A DNA stretch of 64,000 bases from Octopus sinensis (Eukaryota): positions 7,316,001 to 7,380,000 of the forward strand of contig NC_043013.1 in the NCBI RefSeq assembly GCF_006345805.1, written 5' to 3'. Shown here one piece after another: positions 51,501 to 54,500 of the stretch. The position numbers were made by a program, and so were the translations under genes. Position 1 is the first letter of the stretch, and each line of letters starts with the position of its first letter. Under the pieces are notes generated by a model. The model worked only from the letters and a program-made list of their open reading frames with translations, searched no databases and was not told where the DNA came from.

Positions 51501-54500
51501 TGATATGCAAAAAAAGAAATGAAACTCACTACTTCTGACTTCTTAGTTTTAATGTGTTGCTACTGTTTACAATGTTGAACTACAACTTGCCATGGTACCA
51601 ATTTATGGCCACTAAGAGCCAAGTGTTTTTTTTAGCTCCAGACACAATGTGGTATTTCGTCTGTCGTTACGTTCTGAGTTCAAAATCCGCCGAGGTCGAC
51701 TTTGCCTGTCATCCTTTCGGGGTCGATTAAATAAGTACCATTTGCATACTTAATCCGTTTGTCTGTCCTTGTTTGCCCTCTCTATGTTTAGCCCCTTGTG
51801 GGCAATAAAGAAATAAATATATATGAACCCCCTTGTAGCTTGACAACCTACTAAGTTGGCTTTCTAAACAGTATGCTTTCCATTGTTTTTCTTTTTTATA
51901 AATTTTGTTTGTGATCATTTCTGATTGATTGAACATTTTTTAATCTTTTATAGGATTTATATAAACAAGTTTTAACACTTAGCAAAGAAGTCTGTTATTA
52001 TCTTCACAAGGCCGAATCGTTTAAAGAACTTGCTCAAGATTTTGATATCCTTTGGAAATGTTACCATTTTTATATATATTTTTTTTTACCGTTAGCACTT
52101 CGCATATTTGTTGCTTTATTTTTTTTTAAACAGTAAATTAGTCAAATGATGATGGACAGTATACATAATCTTTATAGGTCCCCTCAACCACAGCTGGCGT
52201 TAGAAAAGCTGATGACCTGCCTGGGTATCTGTAGAAAGGATCTCGTCCAAATGCTTGTTGCAGCAAAGTGCACTCCACTCAAAGCAATTACTGGTGATGT
52301 TAAGCCAAGTAATATGTTAAATCTACATGCGTGCCCTTCCTTTGCAAAACATTGTGCCTTTTTAATCTCTTTATGCCAAAATGGTAAAACCTAGCTGTTC
52401 AATAAATAGAGATCATTAAAAATAATTTAGACTGAAATAAGTAGTGAACTTGATATGATCAACTATAACCCTTCAAAGCTGTGCCCCAGCATGGCCATAT
52501 TCCAATGATTTAAAACCAGTTAATTCTTTAGCATTCATCTTACTCTGGACCAGGCTGTGTGTTGTGTTCTTGAGCAAGACACTTTATTTCACGTTGCTCC
52601 AGTTCACTCAGCTGTAGAAATGAGTTGTGACATCACTGGTGCCGAGCTGTATCAACCTTTGCCTTTCCCTTGGATAACATCAGTGGTGTGGAGAGAGGGT
52701 GGGGGTGGAGGCTGGTATGCATGGGTGACTGCTGGTTTTCCATAAACAACCTTGCCCAGACTTGTGCCTCGGAGGGTAACTTTCTAGGTACAATCCCGTG
52801 GTCATTTATGACCAAAGGGGGTCTTTACCCTTTTGTATTAATCATGCCATTATCTCTTAGCTTTAAGATTTCAATGATGTGATTGATTATTTTTAGAATG
52901 ATATTGTAGGGTAGGTGTGAAAGGCTGGATCTGGCTGGTTTGAACATTGAGCATGTAAAACATTTAGGCCAGATATGGCAAGTTTAAACACTAAAGGTTA
53001 AAGAATAAGACTATATCTGTTGTTACAGAAATTGAAAAGAAAATATCACAGCCTCTTTACCGATCTATGAAAGACCTTCCTGTATTTAGTTCCCTTATAT
53101 CCCTTTATGTTACAGTCTCCTGCATCTTTTGCTCCTTGCTAGATTGAGATAGTAAGAAGTGAATGAATTACTAGGGTTGTTATGGCTGAGTAAATCTATT
53201 GAAGGTGGTGTGGTGGTGGTGGTGGTGGTGGTGGTGGTGGTGGTGGTGGTGGTGGTGGTGGTGGTGCCCAAGCCAAGCTGCAGATGATTGAGTAGAACCT
53301 GTGAACCTGTTAAAGAACCAAAGAACAAAAAGGAAGCACTCCATCGGTTACGACGACGAGGGTTCCGGTTGATCCGAATCAACGGAACAGCCTGCTCGTG
53401 AAATTAACGTATAAGTGGCTGAGCACTCCACAGACACGTGTACCCTTAACGTAGTTCTCAGGGATATTCAGCGTGACATAGAGAGTGACAAGGCCAGCCC
53501 TTTGAAATACAGGTACAACAGAAACAGGAAGTAAGAGTGAGAGAAAGTTGTGGTGAAAGAGTACAGCAGGGATCACCACCATCCCCTGCCGGAGCCTCGT
53601 GGAGCTTTAGGTGTTTTCGCTCAATAAACACTCACAACGCCCGGTCTGGGGATCGAAACCGTGATCCTACGACCACGAGTCCGCTGCCCTAACCACTGGG
53701 CCATTGCGTCTCCACCTTAGTTCCTCTAACAGTTTGGTAAACACAAATAAAACGATAAATATGTTCTTTAACTCCTTGTTTACAACAGATTATGCAGATG
53801 CTGTTCACAAAAATTGACTGTCCTTTTGTTTTCATGATGTCCAAGTCTGTAAGTAAATAAAATTTGACAGTTTTCAAATTTTATTATTGTTATTCAAATA
53901 ATGCCTGAGTTAACTTAACTTTTCATCTTTTTGGGTCAATTAACTATGGTACTAGCCAATGTTGTTGTTGTTGCTGCTGATTTTGTTGTTGTTGTTACTG
54001 CTGCTGCTGTTGTTGTTGTTGTTGTTAAGACAGCGAGCTGGCAGAATCATTAGCACACCATGTGAAATGCTTCGCAGTATTTCACCTACCACTACATTTT
54101 GAGTTCAAATTCCGCCAGGGTCAACTTTGCCTTTCATCCTCTCTGGGTCAATAAATTAAGTACCAGTGAAACACTGGCATTACTGTAATCGACTATTCCC
54201 CTCCCTCAAAATGTCAGAGCTTGTGCCTTTACTAAAAAGATTATTATTATTATTATTATTATTATTATTATTATTATTATTATATTATTATCATTATTAA
54301 AGCACTGAGCTGGCAGAATCATTAGTACACCAGGCAAAATGCATTTTGTCCATCTTTACATTCTAAGTTCAAATTCTGTTGAGGTTGACTTAGCCTTTCA
54401 TCTGTTTGGGGTTGATAAATTAAGCACAAGTAAAATATTGGGGTCAGTGTAATTGACTAGTACCCTCCCCCAAATTTCAGACCTTGTGCCTATAGTAGAA

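Follow-up and report, generated by a model that had tools for sequence, protein, structure and literature searches.

The interval from 52045 to 53783 of the window, by which we mean the whole 64,000-nucleotide stretch of DNA analysed here, is very probably a genuine intron of the U12-type AT-AC class in the furry (fry) gene, on the + strand. It separates two short coding exons, hereafter called exon A and exon B, in the region that encodes the Fry_C domain (Table 1). A sequence-only reading had proposed this intron beforehand. All of the coordinates and strings that it gave were found in the sequence, and the U12-type AT-AC join of exons A and B proved to be the best-scoring connection between them and the only one that bears splice signals. 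No single motif is evidence for such an intron; the placement of the motifs at both ends of a frame-preserving, homology-supported interval is.

Table 1. Features of the fry region around the candidate U12-type intron (window coordinates; here and in the text, a slash next to exon or intron letters marks a splice junction)
Feature	Start	End	Strand	Remarks
Upstream fry exon (ends EEVYSDE)	44556	44744	+	Phase 0 to 0, U2-type ttttag/ and /gtaagt
Exon A	51954	52044	+	91 nt, plus first base of Glu codon; acceptor tttatag/ (tttaatcttttatag/)
U12-type AT-AC intron (candidate)	52045	53783	+	1739 nt, phase 1, 42% G+C
5' splice site ATATCCTTT	52045	52053	+	Perfect U12-type consensus match (U11/U6atac recognition site)
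85-codon open frame	52137	52391	+	Same frame as read-through from exon A; not an exon
Interspersed repeat copies	52435	53005		Also at 31 kb, 35 kb, 18.5 kb, 5 kb, and other window positions
(GGT)n microsatellite	53200	53267
SINE-like repeat	53329	53718		95.6% identical to window 10881-11265
Branch-point sequence TTCTTTAAC (predicted)	53764	53772	+	One C-to-T change compared with TTCCTTAAC
3' terminal AC (TTAC/)	53782	53783	+
Exon B	53784	53848	+	65 nt; starts AACAGATTATGCAG, ends TCT/gtaagt
Second in-frame AC (CAAC/)	53785	53786	+	Possible alternative 3' site, 3 nt downstream, one Gln lost
Two CAG triplets, candidate cryptic U2-type acceptors	53786	53797	+	Out of frame with the phase-1 donor
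Next fry exon	56536	56634	+	U2-type ttctag/ and /gtaagg

The fry gene and its exon chain

The window DNA is repeat rich and eukaryotic, with a G+C content of about 32 to 45%. When the translations of the exons between 12.4 and 17.5 kb were concatenated, 175 protein fragments with MOR2-PAG1_mid and MOR2-PAG1_C domains were recovered (best E value, about 3e-62), and the relatives of these exons carry PF14228/PF14225. Direct Pfam matches were obtained at 25.4 bits for PF14225 and at 21.5 bits for PF14228 (below the cut-off, for a fragment). The concatenated exons between 26 and 63 kb matched Pfam Fry_C at 4e-57 (194.5 bits). Furry/Fry proteins are covered in Pfam by MOR2-PAG1_N, MOR2-PAG1_mid, MOR2-PAG1_C, and Fry_C, and the window exons resemble them in matching MOR2-PAG1_mid/C and Fry_C. 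The features by which we assign a gene to furry, the MOR2-PAG1 middle and C-terminal domains and then Fry_C, were found in this order and on one strand. From these matches we conclude that the + strand carries the C-terminal two-thirds of fry, which bears out the gene name given by the sequence-only reading (MOR2-PAG1_mid/C matches at about 1e-62, Fry_C at 4e-57). A PDB sequence search for Fry returned no match.

Much of the sequence of the fry introns is taken up by very long tracts of microsatellite and low-complexity DNA (3300-3850, 5080-5500, 8250-8450, 60290-60880, and 62230-63560), whose types include (CAT/CAC)n, poly-purine, and (TA/TATG)n. The intron between the 56.5-kb and 59.9-kb exons also holds a 162-codon open frame on the - strand (58589-59074), which by eye has the look of a LINE-type reverse transcriptase.

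Around the candidate intron, the reading frame of the upstream exon runs open into exon A, and the chain formed by this exon, exon A, exon B, and the next exon is open in a single frame. Exon A ends in GATTTTG/ATATCCTTTGG, and joining 52044 to 53784 splits a Glu codon as G/AA (phase 1). The remaining junctions of the chain are textbook U2-type sites (ttttag/, ttatag/, and ttctag/; /gtaagt, /gtaagt, and /gtaagg), and only the intron between exons A and B has atatccttt...ttac. Given these strong U2-type signals in the neighbouring introns, weak sites are not typical of the fry gene.

Exon A aligns to the Fry_C model from position 401 on and, in the homologue profile described below, to the stretch 'ltresckyl'. 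When the open frames of the relatives were compared with the window by tblastn, 'LEVQEHLETF' was located at 56551-56640 and 'LDLGxALYKLxFQ' at 59927-60013, with exons A and B upstream of both. The idea that exon A is the relatives' conserved 'DLGKALYKLHFQ' motif was rejected, since tblastn puts this motif at 59927-60013.

Splice signals of the intron

The intron begins with ATATCCTTT, in agreement with (A/G)TATCCTT counted from intron position +1. Near the 3' splice site, TTCTTTAAC agrees with TCCTTRAY with one C-to-T change, and the predicted branch adenosine is 53770 or 53771, 12 to 13 nt from the 3' junction. The branch box pairs with U12 snRNA, and on this basis the C-to-T change in TTCTTTAAC would turn one G-C pair with the snRNA into a G-U pair. 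Between TTCTTTAAC and the junction, which reads TTAC/AACAG, there are 11 bases (53773-53783, TCCTTGTTTAC), and the AT...AC pair of termini gives a frame that is open through four exons. As TTCTTTAAC ends 11 nt before the AC, the spacing is inside the optimum of 11 to 13 nt published for the branch-to-3' distance of minor introns (Olthof et al. 2019, PMC6717393). The fry intron also conforms to the criteria of that paper. Its position in phase 1 fits the tendency of U12 introns to avoid phase 0.

The human/mouse minor-intron table lists 28 occurrences of the TTCTTTAAC variant (Olthof et al. 2019, PMC6717393). One of them is in the minor intron of GMFB in human and mouse, which combines TCG/ATATCCTTT at its 5' end with GTTTCTTTAACT as its branch sequence, according to the same table. 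The GMFB and fry introns have in common an identical ATATCCTTT core, an identical TTCTTTAAC variant, a short branch-to-3' distance, AT-AC termini, and a phase other than 0. They differ in host gene and in organism, and the fry intron is here a prediction from sequence. In the MIDB table, the listed 12-mers with a ATATCCTTT core score 92 to 99 and GTTTCTTTAACT scores 87; judged by these values, the fry intron would be expected to pass with intronIC (probability above 90%) or by the SpliceRack/MIDB PWM criteria.

AT-AC termini are also found in some U2-type introns. In these, the 5' site is U1-like (ATAAGT-like), a polypyrimidine tract is present, and there is no TCCTTAAC box. The fry intron shares the terminal dinucleotides with them, but it starts with ATATCCTTT and carries a U12 branch box at a distance of 11 nt from its 3' end. 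U2-type AT-AC introns are described as a rare subclass processed by the major spliceosome (Wu and Krainer 1997, as cited in PMC6717393).

Frequency of the motifs in the window

Taken one at a time, the motifs are not rare. RTATCCTTT was observed four times in the window, compared with 2.1 expected, and TTCCTTAAC with up to one mismatch was observed 18 times, compared with 19.8 expected, which is the level of chance. Of the four RTATCCTTT copies, only the one at 52045 ends a coding exon. The copies at 13379 and 19354 were rejected as splice sites, being deep-intronic with stops in all frames. We also rejected GTATCCTTT at 6099-6107, a perfect U12-type GT 5' motif. It falls by coincidence within the conserved fry codons for P-Y-P-L, and a scan based on motifs alone would wrongly report it as a splice site.

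From the motif counts in the window, we obtained rough per-position rates of 1.6e-5 for the 5' motif and 1.5e-4 for the branch motif, with about 50 to 110 admissible positions for each. As a rough estimate, the joint chance of the combination would be in the 1e-5 range. What exceeds chance is a 5' motif at an exon end together with a branch motif 11 to 13 nt before an AC, an open frame, and agreement with homologues.

Agreement of the AT-AC join with homologues

The product of exon A, exon B, and the next exon, joined at the AT-AC junction, matched Pfam Fry_C at 36.0 bits in a single stretch (residues 6 to 84 on model positions 401 to 477), the family cut-off being 25.9 bits. Exon B contributes about 14 bits to this match. 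Of the alternatives, the pair GT 52109-AG 53788 reached 25.8 bits and GT 52109 with the other CAG 23.5 bits. Insertion of the inner open frame (52137-52391) gave 26.8 bits, skipping of exon A 27.8 bits, and skipping of exon B 12.1 bits. In every one of these alternatives, exon A was absent from the Fry_C alignment.

As an independent measure, we used a profile of 120 homologue fragments obtained by a profile search of the A-B segment. In the 30 of these 120 fragments that we inspected, the sequence was continuous through the segment or started within it, and none was interrupted at the A/B site. The AT-AC product aligned to the profile from end to end at 40.5 bits and without a gap at the junction; the alignment holds one single-residue deletion, far from the junction. 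The sequence-only reading had put forward a gap-free fit to a human peptide, and the profile points in the same direction. We then enumerated all in-frame pairs of GT, GC, or AT with AG or AC termini, 53 in total, and scored 11 representative products, including that of every in-frame GT-AG pair. The runners-up were the second AC, at 35.3 bits, and an AT-AG pair that lacks consensus signals, at 35.0 bits, and no other consensus-bearing pair was present among the 53 in-frame pairs with canonical termini.

The spacing of conserved residues agrees with the join as well. From a Cys in exon A to a Pro in exon B there are 31 residues in the joined product, and there are 30 to 34 in the four relatives in which both anchors could be located by pattern. 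These comparisons are to be read with the divergence of the segment in mind, as identity to the relatives is only about 20 to 30% across the A-B region and no more than 8 to 16 bits come from exon A. A search of a word-indexed protein database with the 52-residue joined peptide gave no candidate and no shared words.

Alternative ways of joining the exons

The alternative that survives best keeps the same U12-type intron and shifts its 3' junction to the second AC (CAAC/), either for the main product or for a minor isoform. The exon would then start at 53787, and the product would read AQDFEIMQML, without the Gln. This AC is in frame, its distance of 15 to 16 nt from the branch A is within the range of the minor spliceosome, and its product still scores 35.3 bits. 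However, the first AC is at the optimal 12 to 13 nt from the branch A, and its use gives a gap-free alignment to the relatives and 5 bits more. We therefore consider the second AC improbable as the 3' site. Its presence 3 nt downstream makes the exact 3' junction slightly uncertain (53783, which is favoured, or 53786). An isoform that lacks one Gln through this AC would be analogous to NAGNAG sites.

It is even less probable that the major (U2-type) spliceosome excises the interval via weak GT-AG or GC-AG sites, a possibility to which we give very little credit. The candidate sites would be GAA/GTCTGT (51989) or TTT/GTTGCT (52109) as donors and CAG/ATT (53789) or CAG/ATG (53798) as acceptors. 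These pairs are in frame, and the acceptor region, TTCTTTAACTCCTTGTTTACAACAG, is pyrimidine rich with a CAG at its end. The donors, however, have no consensus position beyond the GT itself, whereas the neighbouring introns use GTAAGT or GTAAGG, and the resulting products either lose a conserved Cys-x-Tyr segment or gain 22 hydrophobic junk residues. All of the GT-AG and GC-AG products that we scored had very poor splice signals and only 24 to 28 bits on the profile, compared with 40.5 bits for the AT-AC product, and the U2-type products had 23.5 to 28.2 bits on Pfam Fry_C, compared with 36.0 bits.

According to the sequence-only reading, the upstream exon has no usable GT donor. This was nearly right: there is no strong donor, but the in-frame sites at 51989 and 52109 do exist, as very weak ones, and their products score 13 bits or more lower. 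The same reading had named the two CAGs ending at 53788 and 53797 as potential cryptic U2-type acceptors. Both are real, but they are in phase 0 while the donor is in phase 1, so that splicing from 52044 to either of them would cause a frameshift.

We regard it as barely credible that either exon A or exon B is not constitutive (being skipped or a pseudo-exon), or that a further exon, for example the 52137-52391 open frame, is spliced in between the two. This frame shares the read-through frame of exon A, is flanked by an AG and a GT, and matches one database protein at E=1e-5, but this match adds up five weak stretches of similarity to a tandem-repeat protein that has no relation to fry, the AG at 52176-7 leaves the frame out of phase with exon A, its insertion removes exon A from the Fry_C alignment and lowers the score to 26.8 bits, skipping of exon B or exon A likewise lowers it (12.1 and 27.8 bits), and the Cys-Pro spacing of 31 residues in the direct join lies within the 30 to 34 residues of the relatives. 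The open frame was consequently rejected as an exon. When it was compared with 1.8 billion proteins, only the tandem-repeat protein, with its five weak stretches, and a low-complexity protein were recovered.

Content of the intron

The interior of the AT-AC intron consists to about 60% of interspersed repeats and microsatellite. The SINE-like repeat is present in two copies of roughly 385 nt that are 95.6% identical and located in different fry introns, which suggests that the element belongs to a young SINE-like repeat family. ARAGORN and Rfam found no tRNA and no Rfam match in the copy at 53329-53718. Searches with Rfam and ARAGORN over the window and the intron returned nothing, and no snRNA gene was found within the window.

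The A/B site in relatives

The best identities to fry-related proteins in the database were 45 to 65%, from fragments on short genomic contigs of intron-poor invertebrates. For comparison, nine loci were taken from seven of these proteins. In all five relatives with locus DNA across the region (L001, L003, L006, L007, and L009), an intron at the A/B site was absent; the sample contains no close relatives. In these arthropod- or nematode-like relatives, unlike in the window, exons A, B, and the next exon are fused in one open frame. The U12-type intron at the A/B site was thus found, within the retrieved sample, only in the lineage of the window. With the relatives intronless at this site, the reading receives no support from a conserved U12 intron; an orthologous intron is usual for this class, though not defining, and in a sample without close relatives its absence is weak evidence.

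Another intron of the Fry_C region is shared. This is the U2-type intron at 56634/56635, which directly follows RRDQAKE (motif (K/R)D(H/Q)xxE); its position is conserved between the window and all of the relatives examined (L001, L003, L006, L007, and L009). GTATCCTT motifs were also noticed in the fry loci of other species (L001, position 7763; L006, position 13170) and were rejected as U12 sites, as they lie inside ordinary GT-AG introns. The closest fry relative is L002 (ENA contig ERZ26859061:ctg17854), with 65% identity and an exon spacing similar to that of the window. Its fry matches are at 5268-5390, 6635-6760, and 10001-10525, and the contig stops short of the region that corresponds to the U12-type intron.

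FRY and FRYL were absent from the human/mouse minor-intron lists, in which the control genes SCN8A, GARS, and FRA10AC1 were present. A literature search for FRY or furry together with U12 introns yielded no paper that links them. Molluscs, including octopus, are reported to retain many minor introns; in octopus, the share of human minor introns that is conserved is given as 83%.

Predicted splicing and its meaning for fry

If the intron is spliced as its signals predict, the U11/U12 di-snRNP would recognise the 5' site ATATCCTTT together with the branch sequence TTCTTTAAC, and U4atac/U6atac.U5 would then take the place of U11. The branch adenosine (53770/53771) would attack the 5' site, and ligation at TTAC/, 12 to 13 nt downstream of the branch A, would join 52044 to 53784 and restore the Glu codon (G/AA) in the Fry_C region. 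We infer this excision by the minor spliceosome, and likewise the effects of its failure. The mechanism presupposes a host that has a minor spliceosome, with U11, U12, U4atac, and U6atac snRNPs. Retention of the intron would add 30 junk codons followed by a stop, and use of the 52044 donor with either CAG acceptor (53789 or 53798) would shift the frame and lead to a stop after 6 to 9 codons. Since both outcomes would give stops, the correct fry protein would require the AT-AC junction and, by sequence rules, the minor spliceosome. Expression of fry would in that case be dependent on the minor spliceosome.

The fry intron is an ordinary case within a class that is already well characterised, and it changes nothing in the known workings of U12-type introns. 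Its value lies mainly in annotation and in one point on minor-intron turnover. Gene finders that allow only GT-AG introns would truncate or mis-join fry, with a loss of about 50 Fry_C residues. Because the removal of a U12-type intron can be slow or regulated, the output of fry in this species may be sensitive to the activity of the minor spliceosome. As fry is not a minor-intron gene in human and mouse, the intron is also a candidate data point on the loss, conversion, or gain of U12 introns.

Much more tentative is a reading of its history, which we think rather unlikely as it stands: that the fry minor intron is not shared with mammals and is either an ancestral bilaterian U12 intron kept here or a rare lineage-specific U12-type gain. 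In the ancestral version, the intron may have been lost or converted to U2-type in vertebrates and ecdysozoans. With either origin, if true, this lineage would be the only one in which the expression of fry, which encodes a large scaffold for cell morphogenesis and neuronal tiling, hinges on the activity of the minor spliceosome.
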